Of a stretch of 64,000 bases of DNA, positions 10,489-43,603 are shown piece after piece. A program made the translations under genes and the position numbers. Position 1 is the first letter of the stretch. Each line of letters begins with the position of its first letter. The notes under the pieces are model-generated. The model had not been told where the DNA came from and did not search any database. It saw only the letters and a program-made list of their open reading frames with translations. The stretch covers positions 124,001 to 188,000 of the IMG/VR virus record IMGVR_UViG_3300020179_000005; one strand, 5' to 3'.

Positions 10489-10819
10489 TTGAATTACTAT
10501 ATCCGTATGGGAAAAGATTCATACAAGAGATTGATGGATATCTTTGCTCGTATGATAAAAAATCAAAGATCTGAAATAGTAAACTTTGCAGACATAAACG
10601 ATCCAGATCTAGAAAAGGTAATAACCATACATCCCGACGAACAAGGCAACTTGGTTATTTCCGTATTCAGCCCGGAACAATGGATGATGGTACAAGACGT
10701 TTGCCTAATGACCCGGCAAAGAAGAATCTGAAATAGTATCAGGATTAGAAGAAGACAATCTTACCAAAAAGATGATAATAGATCCCAAAGATTATCCTAA
10801 TACCAACATTGACTTTTAA
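10489..10819 (+). CDS. Hypothetical protein, +1 frameshift at ACCCGG near 10712
   Basis: Removing one C extends ORF 10489..10731 to TAA at 10819 (…TGKEESEIVSGLEEDNL…). Confidence 0.55.
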
Positions 10820-36173: not shown

Positions 36174-38759
36174 ATGACATTGTCCTATCGACCAAGAGTT
36201 CGGCTCAACGCAGAAATATACGGTCCTTTGCGTAGCATGAACGATTACCAGTTCGGCTTCTATGACACAGGCTTTCTGCGTCAAGCCGTACAGGCACTTT
36301 CTGAGCAGCATTCTACGGAAAAACCTGTGTCGTTTAGAATGGCCACTCTACCAATACCTCAGACACCATCCGAATTACGGATAGCAGAAGCCATCGTTCG
36401 CCATCCACAGATTTCTTATGCAATCGTGGACAAGGACAAAATGGCCTTCGTTATCATCGAGGGGTGTCCAGGTTGGCTAGAGGCATTCAAGCGTCTTGGT
36501 TACGAAGTTTACGCCGGAGACAAGACTGCGAAACGACTCAAGACTTTTCACCGTCCTGCACTGTTGAACGCAACGTTTGCCAAGGACGAGTTGAACGTAA
36601 TGATCGTAGATCCCACTCAATATTCAGAATACAATTTCAATGATCCCGAAATGTTAGCTTCTTTGTCACAAGACTATCCCGGTGTAGATTTCAAGGACCC
36701 AAAAGTTCTTGCTCGCTTGTTGGACGGTGGTTTTGTCGTATCTTCAAAGTTGATACAGCGTGCTGTAGCCAACTTGCCGGTATACGAACCCTCAAAGACC
36801 ACCGACACCAAAGAGTATTATTACGATTGGCGGATTCGCAAGAAGCTGGTACGCAATCTCTTGAAGCAGAAAGTATACAATGCCCGCATCGTTTTCGATA
36901 AGGGTTTCCTCAAGGGTAATTGCATAGTTTCTGACAACCTACCTGAGGGAGTTGATATCATCACTTCCCAGGATAACATCAAGTCAGAAATCAAGTATGA
37001 AAACGGATTCAAATTCATTGCAGAGCCGCAAGGTTCCCACGAACGAGTAATCACCGACGACCAAACGCTCATCAACCTTCCAAATCTGTTTCGCCAGTCA
37101 GACATGGAGTTCTGGCTAGACGAAGAGTACAAGAAAATGTTTGATGATGCGGTCAACTGTCGTCTGCTTACGAACTGGCGTGAAATCTACAAACGACAGT
37201 TCCGTAACCTCGCAGACGCAGAAGACGAAGAGGCCAACTCTAGAATGTCGTACGTTGGTTACCGATGGGTATCCTCTGGAATGAAGATAACCGATTCACC
37301 TTGGCTCTTTGAAACATTGGCAACCAGCCACGCAAAACCATACCAGTCTCGGGTTCCCATTCCTTGTTCTGTCTACGAACAGGTGATACCAGAGTCGTTG
37401 GCACATATGGCTGGCTATGAGCTGAGCGTACAGGTGGAACAGGGTCAAATCATTCGTATCAACGAGATAGGCGTTCACGTCGTCAACGACGCTGATTGGC
37501 TCGAGATGTACGAGTCGCACGGCGGCCACGACGAGGACGATTATTTCAAGCTGTTCTACCGCACCATGGAAGGCGGGAAATTTGACGGACAAAAAGTCGT
37601 CATCGTATGCCGTTCACCAAACGGTATCGGTGAGTACTCGATCTTTCGGTATGTAGAGGGCCAATGGTCACCCACTTGGCACAAAGCAGATGGCACTCCG
37701 ATCAAGTTCCCCACCGTTTCCGGGCGCGGATGGCCAAAACGACTCAGTGAATGTATTCGTGATAAAGAAGTACGTTATACTGGATTTCCATCCGAACACG
37801 TTAAGAAGTCCAAGAAAACCGGCTTGTATACACAAGACGACGTCATTTCAGATATCAAAGTCGCCATGACCGGCGGCAATGTCGGAGGTTACGTCAATGC
37901 CGCAATGGTTCATTCTTTGATCATTCACAAACATCGTCCAGTCCAACTTTGTTCTATGGAAAAGGCAATTGACAAGTGCATCAACCCCGACTTTGCAGAG
38001 GATGTACTTGCGATTGACGAAGAAGCCAAGAAGATCGTCAGAGAGATCATCGATTCCGCACAACCAATAGACACGAATGTTTGGCTGAAACGAGGTTTCA
38101 AACGTTATCTGAAGGACGGAGAAGAGATCGTACTGCACGACGGTAAGATAACACAAATGAATCTACTTTGTTCACAAAAGTATTCGGAGTATTGCCAGAA
38201 AGTACGCAATTGGGCGCAGCTAAACGCTAAGCCACCGCAGATCGTACATGATCTCGCCCAACGCCTCTACTTTCAGGCACTTTCCACGGTAAAGGACTTT
38301 CGTAGCAAGATCTATCAGGTCAATATTTCTGAAACCACGCAATCAACTGGCAACATAGTCAGAGGATCATGGGAGTCAATGTACACTGAGATTGTTAATA
38401 TCATTAATTCTTTCCAGCGTATAGAAGACAAGCATGATTTTGTGTTGTCCATGTATTCGGTTTCTTTGAACGTTCCCACATCTGCAGGTAAGGTTACGGA
38501 TCAGATCGTAATGAATCGATTCGTTTATCCTTATTTGGAGTCTGCATTACAGTTTTACGGTATTGCAAGCACCGTCTTTTTCACCCCGAAAGCGGACGGC
38601 GATGTGGACGTAAACACGTTCAAGAGCGACAAATGGCAGTACGACAAGCACATCTATCACGACCCGATGTCTTTCCAAGAAGCACATCGTCAGGACACGG
38701 AAGTTGTGTTCACACCCACGATCAAGTTCACCAGAACTTCCAGCGTATCAAGATATTAA
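36174..38759 (+). CDS. Single-chain two-barrel RNA polymerase-like protein (paralogue 2), variant catalytic loop GGHDEDD
   Basis: LLDGGFVVS, NARIVFDKGFLKG, HGGHDEDDY, VCRSPNG, NVGGYVN, KAID, collinear with 24839..27481. Confidence 0.7.
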   Translation: MTLSYRPRVRLNAEIYGPLRSMNDYQFGFYDTGFLRQAVQALSEQHSTEKPVSFRMATLPIPQTPSELRIAEAIVRHPQISYAIVDKDKMAFVIIEGCPGWLEAFKRLGYEVYAGDKTAKRLKTFHRPALLNATFAKDELNVMIVDPTQYSEYNFNDPEMLASLSQDYPGVDFKDPKVLARLLDGGFVVSSKLIQRAVANLPVYEPSKTTDTKEYYYDWRIRKKLVRNLLKQKVYNARIVFDKGFLKGNCIVSDNLPEGVDIITSQDNIKSEIKYENGFKFIAEPQGSHERVITDDQTLINLPNLFRQSDMEFWLDEEYKKMFDDAVNCRLLTNWREIYKRQFRNLADAEDEEANSRMSYVGYRWVSSGMKITDSPWLFETLATSHAKPYQSRVPIPCSVYEQVIPESLAHMAGYELSVQVEQGQIIRINEIGVHVVNDADWLEMYESHGGHDEDDYFKLFYRTMEGGKFDGQKVVIVCRSPNGIGEYSIFRYVEGQWSPTWHKADGTPIKFPTVSGRGWPKRLSECIRDKEVRYTGFPSEHVKKSKKTGLYTQDDVISDIKVAMTGGNVGGYVNAAMVHSLIIHKHRPVQLCSMEKAIDKCINPDFAEDVLAIDEEAKKIVREIIDSAQPIDTNVWLKRGFKRYLKDGEEIVLHDGKITQMNLLCSQKYSEYCQKVRNWAQLNAKPPQIVHDLAQRLYFQALSTVKDFRSKIYQVNISETTQSTGNIVRGSWESMYTEIVNIINSFQRIEDKHDFVLSMYSVSLNVPTSAGKVTDQIVMNRFVYPYLESALQFYGIASTVFFTPKADGDVDVNTFKSDKWQYDKHIYHDPMSFQEAHRQDTEVVFTPTIKFTRTSSVSRY

Positions 38760-38791
38760 TAACAACAATATATGAAAGGTAAGTATATTAT

Positions 38792-39718
38792 ATGAATAAA
38801 GATACAGAGATTCAAATGCAGCAAGATGAAATTGGTTCTGATTTGGAGATCAACGTTCCTTTGTGGAGAAATTTCGTGAAGGACGTTCGCAAGATGACTT
38901 ATCCCGAAGATCCTCACACTGTTCGGGAATTGGTCAAGGCCTATTATCGACTGCAGGATGCACGCATTGCGATTGCAGCCCAGTCCAGAGAATTGGCCAA
39001 ACGCGAAAAGCCGAATCAAATGAACGAACACATGGCTATCAACATGAAGTACATGGAGCAGTCGTTGGTTGATCCATTCAAGCACTTCAGTGGCAAGTAC
39101 TTGGCCGGACGATGGGCACTTTCCCAGTACGGCATAGGTCCGGTAATCACCGCTGGATTGTTGTCCAACATTGACATTTCCAAGGCCCATACTGCTGGTA
39201 GCATTTGGCGTTTCGCTGGAATGGATCCCACGGTTGTTTGGCAGAAGGGCGAAAAGCGCCCTTATAACGCAGATCTAAAGACTCTCGTTTGGAAAATTGG
39301 ACAGAGTTTCATGAAGTTCTCTGGTCGCGACCAGTGCTTTTATGGCAAGTTGTATCTGCAGGACAAAGCACGTCGTGTACAGTTGAACGAATCTGGAACA
39401 TATTCCGAAAGAGCCAAGTCAATCTTGGAGCAGAAACAATGGAAGAAGAACAATCCTACCCGTCGCAGACTGCAGGAAGGTTATTTACCTGACGGTCAGA
39501 TAGATGGTCAGGCACGTCGCTTTGCTGCCAAGATCTTTTTGTCTCATTTCCATACGGTGTGGTACGAAGATTACCACACTAATCTTCAGGGTACTCCCGT
39601 ACGCGCACCCCGACCTTATGTCATTCAGCATGGCGGTCATTCTCATATGATCGAAGTGCCGAATTATCATCAAGCAGTGGACGGTGTTTCTTCCGGATAC
39701 ATCATTTTGGACAAATAA
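38792..39718 (+). CDS. tasA: Nop-domain/IS110-related RNA-binding protein without nuclease domain (TasA-like)
   Basis: YYRLQDARIA coiled coil, YGIGPVITAGLL, SIWRFAGMDP, YNADLKTLVW, ARRFAAKIFLSHF; only ~45 aa precede the coil, so no RuvC/HNH; TIGR-like array 0.6 kb downstream. Confidence 0.8.
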   Translation: MNKDTEIQMQQDEIGSDLEINVPLWRNFVKDVRKMTYPEDPHTVRELVKAYYRLQDARIAIAAQSRELAKREKPNQMNEHMAINMKYMEQSLVDPFKHFSGKYLAGRWALSQYGIGPVITAGLLSNIDISKAHTAGSIWRFAGMDPTVVWQKGEKRPYNADLKTLVWKIGQSFMKFSGRDQCFYGKLYLQDKARRVQLNESGTYSERAKSILEQKQWKKNNPTRRRLQEGYLPDGQIDGQARRFAAKIFLSHFHTVWYEDYHTNLQGTPVRAPRPYVIQHGGHSHMIEVPNYHQAVDGVSSGYIILDK

Positions 39719-39757
39719 ATAACTTCTTTGTTTTGACCCAAAATACCGGAGGATAAT

Positions 39758-40291
39758 ATGACACAAATGTTAACGAAAATACATTCTGATGTAGTGAGTA
39801 CAATCGTAAGTTATTTCGACGAACATCTTGATCCACTATTGGTTACCGATGTATCTAGATATGCGCCTGGACGCAGAAGATTGTGGCTTCAGTACGAAGC
39901 GCCTCTTACTGCATCTAGACCATGGTTACCCGGACATAGAGACCAAAGAATATGGACTTATATACAGTCGATATGTCGACCTCATAAGTTCAGCCCTGAC
40001 TTTGGTTTGGTGTCAAAGGGTGGTCAGATAGGCCCACATAGAGATGCATCAGCTTTGTGCGCCCATGCAATAAGTATTAACTTGGGTAGAGTTACTTGGT
40101 GCATGGGGGAAAAAGAACAGGTCGAAAAGATCGATCTTGTTGGAGGAGAGGTATTTTCCTTCAACAGTAAAAATGTTCATTGGGTTGAGAACGTAGATCC
40201 GCAACGTTGGGCTATCAACCTTTGGAATGTGTCCAATATTGAGACCCAGCGGTATCAGCAGATCAAGATTCAATACCCGTTATCTGAATAA
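39758..40291 (+). CDS. 2OG-Fe(II) dioxygenase (AlkB-like double-stranded beta-helix)
   Basis: IGPHRD (HxD), ISINLG, GEVFSF, distal H (NVHWV), RWAIN. Confidence 0.75.
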   Translation: MTQMLTKIHSDVVSTIVSYFDEHLDPLLVTDVSRYAPGRRRLWLQYEAPLTASRPWLPGHRDQRIWTYIQSICRPHKFSPDFGLVSKGGQIGPHRDASALCAHAISINLGRVTWCMGEKEQVEKIDLVGGEVFSFNSKNVHWVENVDPQRWAINLWNVSNIETQRYQQIKIQYPLSE

Positions 40292-40329
40292 TATTTTTAA
40301 CCGTAGCCTGAAGAGAGTGCCGTTCACCG

Positions 40330-40671
40330 GAGTGAATCATTGATTTCAATTTGTAACAAGATCTATGAATGAATCATCATTTGGGATTAGTATCATGTCT
40401 GAGGAATGAATCACAAACATTTAATGGTAACATGTAAAGCGAATGAATCATTTTCGCCGATTTGTAACAAACGCAGTAAATGAATCACTAACAACGATTT
40501 TGAACATGATGCACGAATGAATTATAGTCATTGATTTGTAACAATTACTGGGAATGAATCATCAGGATGAATTCGTAGCAAACCACCTGAATGAATCACA
40601 CATCGAAACATGTATCATTAGGTAGAAATGAATCAACACCTTTGATTGTAACACGTACGAAAAATGAACCA
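40330..40671 (+). ncRNA. TIGR-like dual-repeat guide array: 9 units of 37 nt (last 36) plus a terminal edge repeat
   Basis: Edge RAATGAATCA at 40330, 40367, 40404, 40441, 40478, 40515, 40552, 40589, 40626, 40662, alternating with loop ATTTGTAACA-like repeats; unique 8-9 nt spacers between them. Confidence 0.9.
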
Positions 40672-40746
40672 TTTCAAATAAAAGGATCGGAACGAGTGGA
40701 CCCATACCACCCATTCCGACCCTACCAACCACAAAGGAGTCACAAA

Positions 40747-41127
40747 GTGACGACTACAGTATACACCAAAACATCCGACGTTGACAAAATGTTGGACGTT
40801 TTGCGGACTTTAATTTCTTCACCTAGAGTTGAGCCAACTATTATTGACTATCATCCTGAGTCACGTAAGGGAATAGTTTATAAGATTGGTAAATACACCA
40901 AAAAGACCGTAAACTACGTGAAAAGAACAGAGTCAAAAACAGGCGTTCTTGTTGCTACATGGGTAGTAGAAAGCATCGCTTATGCATTGACGTTCTTGGT
41001 ATTGTTGTCTTCCGGTGCAGTAGTTACTGCTGCATTGTGGACAGCTTTGTATGTTTATATTACTTATGCTTTCTTTGACATGCTCAAAGATTCTGTCGTA
41101 TTCAATAGTATAATCAAAGGATCGTAG
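40747..41127 (+). CDS. Membrane protein (2 TM segments); start GTG 40747
   Basis: AAGGAG RBS; the longer track ORF begins inside the array. Confidence 0.6.
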   Translation: MTTTVYTKTSDVDKMLDVLRTLISSPRVEPTIIDYHPESRKGIVYKIGKYTKKTVNYVKRTESKTGVLVATWVVESIAYALTFLVLLSSGAVVTAALWTALYVYITYAFFDMLKDSVVFNSIIKGS

Positions 41128-41135
41128 AAAATATT

Positions 41136-41741
41136 ATGGCGATTAAGTATCCTTCTTTACAAGACTATGTAAATAGTCCAGAAGAAGAAATAAAAAATAT
41201 CACTAGTTCTTTTAGTGACCACGTTAAGCTAACTAACAATGCTGCTTATCGCCCTAGATTGGTATTTTTCGATTTCTTTGGAGACAAGATTTTTGGTATT
41301 GTGGCCAGATCTTATGTAGATGAAACGGATTTCAAGTCTTGCATTGCAGAGATGATGTATTCTTACAGTGCTGTGCATGCAGAAGCATGTGTGCTTGTGC
41401 TTGATTCTACGTATAAATCTAAAGATTCTAAAGATGTTAACAATTGTTTGCATTGTTATTTTGTGGGTGACAAATCGGCCGGCGTAGTCTTTCTTCCTTA
41501 CACTTTGAACGACAAAGAAGTAGTTTGGGACACTGCCCAACAAAGTTCAAAGGAGATAGATCTAAAGGATCACGACGGAGTTACTCAGGAGATGATAGAA
41601 TTGCTTTATGCTTATACACATCTTGATAAACCTCCGTTCAGTATAAATGATTTGTTATCGTACTATACATCAATGCATTATCAATTTAGATCATTTAAGA
41701 ATATGAATATAACGTATATTGATTACAGTAAGAGTAAATGA
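41136..41741 (+). CDS. Hypothetical protein
   Basis: 201-aa ORF. Confidence 0.65.
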   Translation: MAIKYPSLQDYVNSPEEEIKNITSSFSDHVKLTNNAAYRPRLVFFDFFGDKIFGIVARSYVDETDFKSCIAEMMYSYSAVHAEACVLVLDSTYKSKDSKDVNNCLHCYFVGDKSAGVVFLPYTLNDKEVVWDTAQQSSKEIDLKDHDGVTQEMIELLYAYTHLDKPPFSINDLLSYYTSMHYQFRSFKNMNITYIDYSKSK

Positions 41742-41914
41742 AAATATGCAAAAAAACAAACAAAATATAAAAACAGAAAAAGAATATATAACATTAAAAG
41801 ACAAAACCGTAGTTTATTATGTTAAGATCGACACTGTTTCTGACGAACAAGTAGAAGACATGATGACCGAGTCTGTGTCGTACGAATATCAAGAGTCATA
41901 TAGTTAGGAGAGTT

Positions 41915-43603
41915 GTGACTATACAACTTAGACCATATCAACAGGAAGCGCTAGATGCAATAGTCAATAATATTGACAAGAATATTTTTAGACAGCTGAT
42001 AGTTCTTCCGACTGGTTCAGGTAAAACAGTTGTATTTAGTCATCTACCCCAAACTATACCCGATGCTTTACCGATGCTCGTTCTTGCCCACAGAGGTGAA
42101 CTTCTAGAACAGGCCAAGGACAAAATTTTATGGTCCAATCCTGATCTGGATGTTCAAACAGAAAAAGCAGAACAAACTGCAGAACTCTGTGACGTTGTAG
42201 TTGCTTCTGTGCAAACTCTTGGTAGGTCAGATTCTAACAGAATAAATAAATTTTCTAAAAATTATTTTAAGACTATAGTCGTGGACGAAGCACATCATGC
42301 TGCAGCCACAACGTACAGAAGAATATTGGATTATTTTGATCCCAATCTTCTTTTGGGCGTTACCGCTACACCACAACGAAGTGATTCGGTAAGATTGACA
42401 GATGTTTTCGACGAGATAGTTTACTATAAAAATATTCTTGATTTAATTCAAGAAGGATATCTTTGTAGGTTAGTAGGTTATAGAATAAACACAGACACTG
42501 ACATTTCGGAAGTGGAGACAACAAATGGCGATTATATCGCGTCTCAATTGGAAGATACTATCAATAATCCTTACCGTAACAATCTTGTTGTTAAGTCTTA
42601 TCTGGAGATTGCAAAAGATAAAAAAGCCCTCGTATTTGCCGCTGGAGTACAGCACGCAAAAGACCTGGCCGCATCCTTTGCGAGACAAGGGACACCTGTA
42701 CGAGTAGTTCTTGGCGACACTCCAGACGAACAAAGACAATCTACTTTCAATGATTTTCGTTCTGGAAAAATAAAAGTAGTCGTCAATGTGGGTGTATTAA
42801 CCGAGGGCTTTGACGAGCCTTCTGTAGAGGTCGTTATATTGGCTAGACCAACACGATCATCATTGTTGTACACTCAGATAGTCGGTCGTGGAACCCGTCT
42901 ATTTGAGGGAAAAAACAATTGCATGATCATAGACGTAGCCGATACCACGAAAGGCAAAAAGCCTTTGGGTCTCCCCACATTGTTGGGCATGCCGCCAGAT
43001 TTTGACCTGCAAGGTCAAGATTTGGTCGATGTTGCCAACAAGTACAAGGAACTGGAAGCCTACTGCCCAGGAGAGGCCGTTAGGGTGCTTAAACCACAGG
43101 ACATTGATTTAGCGTACAAGAGAATTGATTTGTTCATGCCGCCACCACCTAATCAGTTCATATTACAATATTCAACTTTTGTTTGGGCTGAAACTGCACA
43201 GGATGAATACAGATTGGGCATTGGAAACAACGAATCTTTAAAGATACACACAGACACTCTTGGAAGATTGTCTGTTGTGCACATACAAAAAGTTGGGTTC
43301 AATACTGTTCCTAATGAGACCGTATTAGGATACCCAGCTGATATTAGGGAAGCTTTTGCAAGAAGCGACAGGTGGGTCATAAACAATAGATCTTCCAGCG
43401 TAAATTTAATTGATAATCAATCTGTTTGGAGACATGATGAACCAACTGACAAGCAGAAAAGGTTGCTCAAAAGAATTGGTGTACCTTTGACTGCAGATAT
43501 GACCAAAGGTATTGCAAGCAACATCATAACAAAGTATTATGAAGCTAATCCCAAACCGAAATGGCTTGAAAACAAAATAGCTTCAAATAAGAAATGGAAG
43601 TAA
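41915..43603 (+). CDS. Superfamily 2 DEAH helicase (ResIII/Irc3-like)
   Basis: LRPYQ, LPTGSGKT, VVDEAHH, GVTATP, VLTEGFD, QIVGRGTR. Confidence 0.95.
   Translation: MTIQLRPYQQEALDAIVNNIDKNIFRQLIVLPTGSGKTVVFSHLPQTIPDALPMLVLAHRGELLEQAKDKILWSNPDLDVQTEKAEQTAELCDVVVASVQTLGRSDSNRINKFSKNYFKTIVVDEAHHAAATTYRRILDYFDPNLLLGVTATPQRSDSVRLTDVFDEIVYYKNILDLIQEGYLCRLVGYRINTDTDISEVETTNGDYIASQLEDTINNPYRNNLVVKSYLEIAKDKKALVFAAGVQHAKDLAASFARQGTPVRVVLGDTPDEQRQSTFNDFRSGKIKVVVNVGVLTEGFDEPSVEVVILARPTRSSLLYTQIVGRGTRLFEGKNNCMIIDVADTTKGKKPLGLPTLLGMPPDFDLQGQDLVDVANKYKELEAYCPGEAVRVLKPQDIDLAYKRIDLFMPPPPNQFILQYSTFVWAETAQDEYRLGIGNNESLKIHTDTLGRLSVVHIQKVGFNTVPNETVLGYPADIREAFARSDRWVINNRSSSVNLIDNQSVWRHDEPTDKQKRLLKRIGVPLTADMTKGIASNIITKYYEANPKPKWLENKIASNKKWK

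Follow-up and report, generated by a model that had tools for sequence, protein, structure and literature searches.

TIGR-Tas systems were described in 2025 from about 20,000 loci in databases that included the JGI metagenomes. In dual-repeat TIGR arrays, two repeats of 8–12 nucleotides (nt) alternate, each opening with UG and closing with CA, and every unit holds two 9-nt spacers (PMC12045711). According to the published rules, spacer A base-pairs with one strand and, over the adjoining 9 base pairs (bp), spacer B with the opposite one; a gap of 0–2 bp is allowed, and no motif next to the site is needed. In E. coli, transcription is repressed by nuclease-free TasA and by dead TasR, both of which bind matched DNA, as seen in reporter and gel-shift assays (bioRxiv 10.64898/2026.09.09.750476). 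No partner is needed for binding and repression by the published TasA proteins, and a TasA-activator fusion can switch genes on. The DNA analyzed here is a 64-kb stretch, called the window throughout, of the phage record IMGVR_UViG_3300020179_000005 (209,701 bp). It harbors a TIGR-TasA locus in which an open reading frame (ORF) for a predicted 2-oxoglutarate (2OG)-Fe(II) dioxygenase, ORF2, is located between tasA and the guide array.

We estimate a probability of roughly 0.7 that the locus is a functional dual-repeat TIGR-TasA system, and that ORF2 encodes a real enzyme which is most likely a backbone neighbor of the system, together with the gene of an 861-amino-acid (aa) protein in front of tasA. 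The direct evidence consists of the homology and fold of TasA and ORF2, the anatomy and turnover of the array, the conservation of a candidate dyad in TasA, the boundaries of the tasA-array cassette in related phages, and the fusions of ORF2-like domains. The features of the locus are as follows.

36174–38759, plus strand: gene of the conserved 861-aa protein, a core gene of the phage family; its stop lies 32 bp before tasA
38792–39718, plus strand: tasA, encoding a 308-aa TIGR-associated Nop-domain protein, nuclease-less (NCBIfam, PDB sequence and Foldseek matches)
39758–40291, plus strand: ORF2, encoding a 177-aa 2OG-Fe(II) dioxygenase (AlphaFold2 fold, invariant triad)
40331–40671, plus strand: dual-repeat TIGR array of nine units and a terminal edge repeat (register, shuffled sequences, relatives)
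40673–40723, minus strand: 17-bp hairpin (40683–40723) with U-run, terminator-like (RNA folding)
40747–41127, plus strand: 126-aa gene with start GTG at 40747, the right-hand limit of the locus
After the 126-aa gene and before the helicase: 201-aa gene
41915–43603: superfamily-2 helicase (Pfam)

The TasA protein

A preliminary description of this DNA had proposed a TIGR-Tas system with the nuclease-less TasA form, on the ground of a 308-aa protein resembling Nop and the IS110 C-terminal part, without RuvC or HNH. Profile, structure and PDB searches all bear this out. The protein scores 163.5 bits on the NCBIfam model NF052498 TIGR_Tas_endo (cut-off 100). As a single sequence it matches TasH at 4.7e-13 and TasR (9mty) at 4.5e-8 among PDB sequences, and the family profile matches them at 3.7e-15 and 2.1e-22, respectively. 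The AlphaFold2 (AF2) model, built on 27 relatives, has a predicted local distance difference test (pLDDT) score of 84, and its best 11 Foldseek matches are all cryo-electron microscopy structures of TasH or TasR.

In the model, residues 1–19 are disordered, residues 23–100 form coiled-coil-like helices, and the helical Nop domain of residues 104–266 is followed by a short C-terminal hairpin loop. The predicted long helices 41–70 and 76–100 align to the coiled-coil part of TasH and TasR. Except for the C-terminal hairpin the model is all-helical, and nothing in it is HNH- or RuvC-like. Pfam searches found neither HNH nor RuvC in the protein, and its alignment with TasH begins past the HNH part of TasH. 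The C-terminal loop contains P275-Y276 and H283, with a Y-x6-H spacing identical to that of Y289/H296, the catalytic processing residues of SpTasH (PMC13421893). Y276/H283 is a candidate processing dyad; its correspondence to TasH is based on the spacing and on the alignment to 9mty. Array-bearing relatives keep the dyad, and three lineages with short TasA-like proteins, in which the nearest 8 kb hold no array, have lost it. The Nop homology, the absence of HNH and RuvC, and the Y276/H283 dyad together identify the 308-aa product as TasA.

The same searches bear on whether the gene is a decaying or domesticated remnant of an IS110-type transposase with short repeats nearby. PHROG 4285, named transposase, matches TasA at 2e-35, Pfam Transposase_20 gives a sub-threshold match (E 0.0096), and the structures of IS621 and ISCro4 give weak profile matches. 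The known kinship of Tas proteins to IS110 accounts for the first two. Against such an origin, the TasA model has no DEDD/RuvC-like N-terminal domain, the NCBIfam IS110 model scores 15.7 with a cut-off of 140, and IS110-family recombinases rank behind the Tas structures in Foldseek by four orders of magnitude in E-value. Moreover, a dual-repeat array is kept beside tasA in relatives. The domain content of TasA already refutes this origin, and its probability is negligible. The labels are an annotation trap in two ways, for PHROGs names tasA a transposase and the name of the NCBIfam model implies an RNA-guided endonuclease even though the nuclease domain is absent.

Other TasA-like proteins were found in related loci, which are designated here by L numbers. 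Three short proteins of 247–252 aa (L046 6796–7542, L049 7234–7992 and L050 6866–7606) have lost the N-terminal region and the Tyr/His dyad, and a TasA-like copy in L048 (6176–7009) contains an in-frame stop. These four look like decaying or repurposed Tas. A third, very divergent subfamily of 251 aa, with about 32% identity, is represented by L079 8850–9605 and L174 13326–14081. A few genes separate its members from the 861-aa gene upstream; ORF2 is beside the L079 copy and not beside that of L174, and an array was not seen at either.

The guide array

A unit of the array runs from an edge repeat (9 nt) through spacer A (9 nt) and a loop repeat (9–10 nt) to spacer B (9 nt). Copies of the edge repeat AATGAATCA start at 40368, 40405, 40442, 40479, 40553, 40590 and 40627. 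Variants are found at 40331 (AGTGAATCA) and 40516 (AATGAATTA), and a tenth edge repeat, AATGAACCA (40663–40671), closes the array. The edge repeats of the units are thus AATGAATCA or one substitution off, and all units contain the edge core TGAATCA. The strict 37-nt period given in the preliminary description holds for eight units, the last one being 36 nt, and the four spacer pairs quoted there are exactly those of units 1–4. Its statement that both repeats have the form TG..CA holds for the edge repeat and, as a consensus, for the loop repeat, which has TG in about half of the units.

The loop repeat is far more degenerate than the edge repeat. Within its consensus ATTTGTAACA only A-T-T-x-G-T-A-x-C-A is kept. 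In the loop core, consensus TGTAACA, CA is present in eight of nine counted units and G in seven of nine, while the T of TG varies. The loop repeat of L090, ATTTAAAACA, has no TG.

The window contains seven exact copies of the edge repeat, each of them in the array and at multiples of 37 nt, where shuffled sequences give an expectation of 1.7. The pattern of edge plus loop matches eight times in the array versus 0.8 expected for the whole window. Tandem Repeats Finder did not report the array, since the loop repeat is degenerate and the units are too divergent. Arrays were located instead by a lag-autocorrelation scan and motif chaining. Alignment A3 was used for finding loci; the broader A4 was too divergent.

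The TG...CA motif is identical on both strands, and the orientation of the array therefore needs other evidence. On the plus strand the variable 9 nt begin right after the ...CA of both repeats, which fits spacers anchored at box C (PMC12045711). In L008–L010, tasA is followed by a plus-strand hairpin with a T-run, TATAAT, an edge repeat truncated at its 5′ end and then the array; in L007, tasA is followed by a plus-strand hairpin and a 5′-truncated edge repeat. Terminator scans in the relatives gave no help on orientation. The array of the window has no leader of its own.

Relatives carry homologous arrays with the same edge repeat adjoining tasA. The arrays of L070 (8576–9028) and L071 (2169–2546) have the terminal units 8 and 9 and several internal units in common. 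These two loci are 97–98% identical in ORF2 and differ by array units that were replaced, added or point-mutated. Compared with the window, the turnover in L070 and L071 is internal or leader-proximal, and the 3′ end is fixed. The arrays of L009 and L014 have seven of about 20 units in common. Judging by this turnover of units, the array looks live. Such turnover between near-identical phages also offers natural evidence on how TIGR arrays gain spacers, an unsolved question.

A 39-nt periodic stretch after the helicase (L175 13850–15394; also in L050, L164, L166 and L078) was considered as a second array and rejected, being a Thr/Ser-rich linker in a 514-aa subtilisin-like protein.

The ORF2 dioxygenase

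The stop codon of tasA is 39 bp from the ATG of ORF2, which is preceded by GGAGG at 7 nt, and the stop of ORF2 is likewise 39 bp from the first edge repeat. An AlkB-like dioxygenase between tasA and array, with gaps of about 40 bp on each side, was part of the preliminary description, and both points agree with the present data. The AF2 model of ORF2, built on ten homologues, has a pLDDT of 93 and shows a double-stranded beta-helix fold. It gives 121 PDB matches at E<=0.001, the best 50 of which are mostly 2OG oxygenases with a few cupins. The Foldseek order is ALKBH2, ALKBH3, ALKBH6, E. coli AlkB and ALKBH5 (template modeling scores 0.58–0.70), narrowly ahead of prolyl hydroxylases. Identity to the solved structures is just 9–16%.

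H94, D96 and H141 form the iron triad and R150 is a candidate 2-oxoglutarate-binding residue. All four are invariant in 36 of 36 family members, which are 29–74% identical to ORF2. The protein stays below the Pfam cut-offs (2OG-FeII_Oxy_3 16.7 bits versus 27; Cupin_2 also under) and has no NCBIfam or PHROG match. From the model and the conserved residues, the ORF2 product is a catalytically competent-looking 2OG-Fe(II) dioxygenase, and the label AlkB-like is a fair one at the level of the predicted fold. Its nine-residue spacing from His to Arg is presumably nearer to that of prolyl hydroxylases than to that of AlkB.

The ORF2 family is small and almost wholly viral; 1.84 billion proteins include 201 representatives of it. 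In the 185,579 species genomes that were scanned, one relative only turned up, L182, on contig JBBQHY010000071.1 of a metagenome-assembled genome (MAG) of a Pseudanabaenales cyanobacterium. It is a weak hint of a cyanobacterial host, or of a phage fragment binned into the MAG. Neither a TasA nor an 861-like gene is alongside this relative.

tasA and ORF2 in related phages

Whether tasA and ORF2 belong together was examined in four samples: loci fetched with TasA, loci fetched with ORF2, loci fetched with the 861-aa protein, and a TasA tree. The TasA-fetched sample contains 39 viral loci, nearly all with arrays of 36–37 nt period adjoining tasA. Among them, ORF2 homologues are confined to one phage family, which has the 861-aa gene and the helicase in common, and ORF2 is absent at all 15 distinct TasAs from other phages. 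The ORF2-fetched metagenome loci number 73; 29 have a TasA or an array in their flanks and 44 have neither. For sixteen of the 44, the flank on either side is 2.5 kb or longer.

The 861-aa gene is the least biased anchor. After merging duplicates, the 861-anchored lineages comprise about ten with both TasA and ORF2, 6–7 with TasA only, two with ORF2 only and eight with neither (Fisher p 0.05–0.11, uncorrected for shared ancestry). On the tree of 35 distinct TasA proteins, adjacency to ORF2 cannot be explained by fewer than five gains or losses, and the near-identical TasA-like proteins of L076 and L169 differ in it. TasA with an array and without ORF2 occurs in L004, L005 and L007, and ORF2 without TasA in L058/L177 and L057/L155.

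Two pairs of loci reveal the boundaries. L177 and L157 are colinear with 81–84% identity, and the 1,794 bp that L157 has in addition are tasA and the array: the interval between the 861 gene and ORF2 spans 10619–12413 in L157 and only 38 bp, 10634–10672, in L177. L155 and L159 are colinear with 87–88% identity. Here the 2,127-bp tasA-array block of L159 (10496–12623) is swapped for 1,484 bp in L155 (8913–10397), which encode two unrelated ORFs of 178 and 296 aa with no family match. In L057, the place of tasA is taken by a 296-aa ORF, which was weighed as a possible divergent TasA and rejected for lack of similarity. The two comparisons show that the tasA-array block is an exchangeable cassette and that ORF2 is part of the flank. 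The expectation of a conserved tasA-dioxygenase-array synteny in related phages thus fails, presence and absence varying between flanks that are 81–88% identical.

Where the genes do meet, their order differs. The window has tasA-ORF2-array, and L008–L010 and L014 have tasA-array-ORF2. L012 has tasA, small ORFs, ORF2, small ORFs and the array. In L090 (2143–3520) the order is tasA-array-ORF2-array, with the ATG of ORF2 14 nt past the last edge repeat. The degenerate, array-less TasA-like genes of L046, L049 and L050 also adjoin ORF2. One of the small ORFs in L012 (8211–8540, 110 aa, between ORF2 and the array) has a sub-threshold Pfam match to the Cas9 helical lobe (E 3.9e-4, 19.8 bits versus 27), which is probably noise.

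A partnership has been proposed in which TasA and its guides bring ORF2 to matched DNA, where ORF2 would oxidize or demethylate bases and so supply the missing effector activity. If true, this phage lineage would possess a natural oxidase or demethylase of bases that is guided by RNA, the place of the nuclease being taken by an effector of the epigenetic or damage type, and the interleaving of ORF2 with the array in the window and with sub-arrays in L090 would reflect the TasA-ORF2 partnership. The intact triad, with AlkB homologues as the nearest folds, the common strand and the tight spacing are in its favor. Three observations, moreover, weigh against taking ORF2 for a mere backbone neighbor. 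ORF2 adjoins tasA or the array in about ten lineages and in three gene orders, among them the position between the sub-arrays of L090. Within the family it is commoner with TasA (10 of 16–17 lineages) than without (two of ten), a modest positive association. The leaderless array of the window also puts ORF2 physically inside the presumed tasA-array transcript.

These co-occurrences are not independent, however, because all are in one phage family with a conserved gene order, and we read the recurrent neighborhood as two hotspots flanking the backbone gene ORF2. An accessory gene would stay in the tasA operon while the flanks vary; ORF2 keeps with the flank when tasA and the array are absent or replaced. 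It lies beyond the cassette boundary, each gene occurs without the other, including the TasAs of other phages and the at least 16 well-flanked metagenome loci mentioned above, and the published TasAs act alone. A full-text search of the searchable library found no paper that ties natural TIGR-Tas loci to a dioxygenase. The cassette boundary, the separate occurrences and the fusions described below, which never involve Tas, make an RNA-guided dioxygenase very improbable, and the earlier suggestion that the dioxygenase provides the catalysis missing from TasA is not sustained.

A looser coupling would require no recruitment to targets. ORF2 might be co-expressed in a supporting role, for example in repair or demethylation of phage nucleic acid, or processing by TasA might set the expression of ORF2. 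The array transcript includes the ORF2 message in the window, and more so in L090 with its 14-nt distance; cutting at the edge repeats would therefore trim the ORF2 mRNA. In L008–L010, however, the array has its own leader and ORF2 follows the array, with a promoter-like site between them in L008, and in L058/L177 ORF2 appears to be expressed without any TIGR element. Such a coupling is conceivable, although we consider it unlikely, and the reading of ORF2 as a backbone neighbor is preferred.

The 861-aa protein and ORF2 fusions

The 861-aa protein has no Pfam, PHROG, NCBIfam, PADLOC or PDB-sequence match. It has at least 253 homologue clusters, all of them unnamed or "hypothetical". Its invariant motifs include HGG-x-D-x-DD-x-FK and RSPNG-x-GEY.

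An ORF2-like domain and an 861-like region are joined in one reading frame at 12 metagenome loci (L094, L099–L103, L108, L114, L115, L121, L124 and L130), the products being 1081–1953 aa long. The same fusion occurs in 11 large representative proteins of 1114–2126 aa (among P0015–P0036). Some of the large fused proteins also have PIF1 helicase and NADAR domains, and a Tas domain is in none of the ORF2-like fusion proteins. In L058, ORF2 directly follows the 861 gene. Judged from these sequences, the demonstrable evolutionary partner of ORF2 is the 861-aa protein family. The fusions of ORF2 and 861-like regions, with PIF1 or NADAR in some, point to an unstudied phage module for DNA transactions or DNA repair.

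Neighboring genes and the hairpin behind the array

Two shorter viral contigs match the window proteins equally well (100% identity for the proteins tested), and megablast against GenBank phages found no close relative of the window. From about 30.9 kb to 64 kb of the window the plus strand carries every predicted gene. PADLOC gave zero matches among the five locus genes, and Rfam no family within 38000–42000. The 126-aa gene has no family match in Pfam or PHROG, and its homologues sit downstream of the locus in relatives. A listed ORF at 40591–41127 has a spurious 5′ end, which overlaps the last two array units; the real start is the GTG at 40747 after AAAGGAG.

The hairpin adjoins the array at its 3′ end. 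As minus-strand RNA it has a folding energy of -34 kcal/mol (z -5.1), compared with -17.8 for the plus strand, and on the minus strand a U-run follows, as in an intrinsic terminator. Three substitutions in L071 preserve the pairing on the minus strand only. A promoter-like site is present on the minus strand at 40787–40758. A minus-strand RNA of about 75 nt from this site may end at the hairpin and would be antisense to the next gene at its ribosome-binding site, or the hairpin may protect the array against antisense read-through.

Targets and proposed function

Targets were searched with both half-site orders, gaps of 0–2 bp and both strands, looking for spacer A next to the reverse complement of spacer B as anticipated in the preliminary description. 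The nine guides of the window gave four matches at three mismatches in the window, where shuffles gave 2.9, so no target beyond chance. For 117 unique guides of the family, 940 kb of related phage DNA contained no site at <=1 mismatch, and the matches at two mismatches were at shuffle level. For units 8 and 9, exact sites were found in none of the viral contigs, among them the 209.7-kb contig of the phage itself. At least these two guides are therefore unlikely to act in self-regulation through perfect sites. By default we take host or competitor DNA as the target. In collections of tens to hundreds of gigabases, chance 18-bp matches would outnumber real targets.

The lack of targets in these searches would also be expected of an inactive system, with a relic array that has no live targets, and decayed versions do exist in related lineages, namely the short, dyad-less and array-less TasA-like genes and the one with an in-frame stop. 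The locus of the window differs from these, for its reading frame and candidate Y/H dyad are intact and its edge repeats nearly perfect. Units turn over among near-identical phages, and 18-bp targets are not to be expected in the little sequence that can be searched with mismatches. Inactivity is thus quite improbable, and a functional system is the better account.

Under this account, tasA, ORF2 and the array are probably co-transcribed, given the 39-bp gaps, the absence of a terminator between them and the leaderless array. A TasA dimer would bind the precursor RNA and cut within the edge repeats by means of Y276/H283, yielding 37-nt guides. In each guide, spacer A would pair with one DNA strand; spacer B would do so with the opposite strand, in the adjacent 9-bp half-site. 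Because TasA has no nuclease domain, the expected outcome is binding rather than cleavage: sequence-specific binding and bending of the DNA would block transcription or replication of the target, for which host DNA and competing mobile elements are the likeliest candidates. The tasA-array cassette would have been inserted or exchanged beside the backbone pair of ORF2 and the 861-aa gene. The earlier alternative that TasA acts as a guided repressor is in keeping with the experiments on other TasAs, by analogy with which it is proposed here.

Three points count against this picture. No guide matched a DNA target, and binding and repression are deduced from other TasA proteins. The two TasAs in the repression assays are of stem-loop types, not dual-repeat (bioRxiv 10.64898/2026.09.09.750476). 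TIGR arrays have been described with a plus-strand terminator, and the hairpin behind this array is a minus-strand structure instead.

As a TIGR-TasA system the locus is ordinary, and its value is mostly corrective, in that a reading by guilt of association fails against related phages. What emerges is a fixed hotspot, in a family of freshwater-type phages of about 200 kb, at which tasA and the array behave as an exchangeable cassette.

Comparison with known systems

The closest described system is the dual-repeat TIGR-TasA represented by FpTasA of Flavonifractor plautii (Faure et al. 2025, PMC12045711). Both have a solo Nop Tas, an adjoining edge/loop array with two 9-nt spacers and UG...CA repeats, phage-borne loci and spacers anchored after box C. 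The typical unit there is 36 nt and here 37, and the loop repeat is unusually degenerate here. The locus of the window further differs in the coding gene between tasA and the array, the leaderless array and the minus-strand hairpin behind it.

The solved nucleases SpTasH (Salicola phage CGphi29; 9w03/21kl) and TaTasR (9mty) match best in both sequence and fold, over the coiled coil and the Nop domain. SpTasH has its C-terminal Tyr and His seven residues apart, as does the TasA of the window. The nucleases carry an N-terminal HNH or RuvC domain; the window TasA has none, so no DNA cleavage is expected of it.

The only Tas accessory gene reported is tasParB, in tasParB-tasA loci (PMC12045711). 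It resembles ORF2 as a second gene in a tasA-array locus, with arrays upstream, downstream or between. However, tasParB is consistently operonic with tasA while the flanks vary, and ORF2 instead keeps with the flank. The former encodes a ParB-like DNA binder, the latter a dioxygenase.

With the dioxygenases of the AlkB family and the prolyl-hydroxylase type, ORF2 has in common the double-stranded beta-helix, the H-x-D...H triad and the Arg after the second His, and AlkB homologues acting on DNA or RNA are its top structural matches. It differs by its 9–16% identity, its Pfam scores below the cut-off, its small viral family and its frequent fusion to an 861-type module.

Finally, nuclease-free CRISPR systems (type IV and type V-M), named as analogues in PMC12045711, are alike in RNA-guided binding without cleavage, are carried on mobile elements and are thought to act against competitors. 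Their proteins are unrelated to TIGR-TasA, whose target is 18 bp split over both strands, with no protospacer-adjacent motif.

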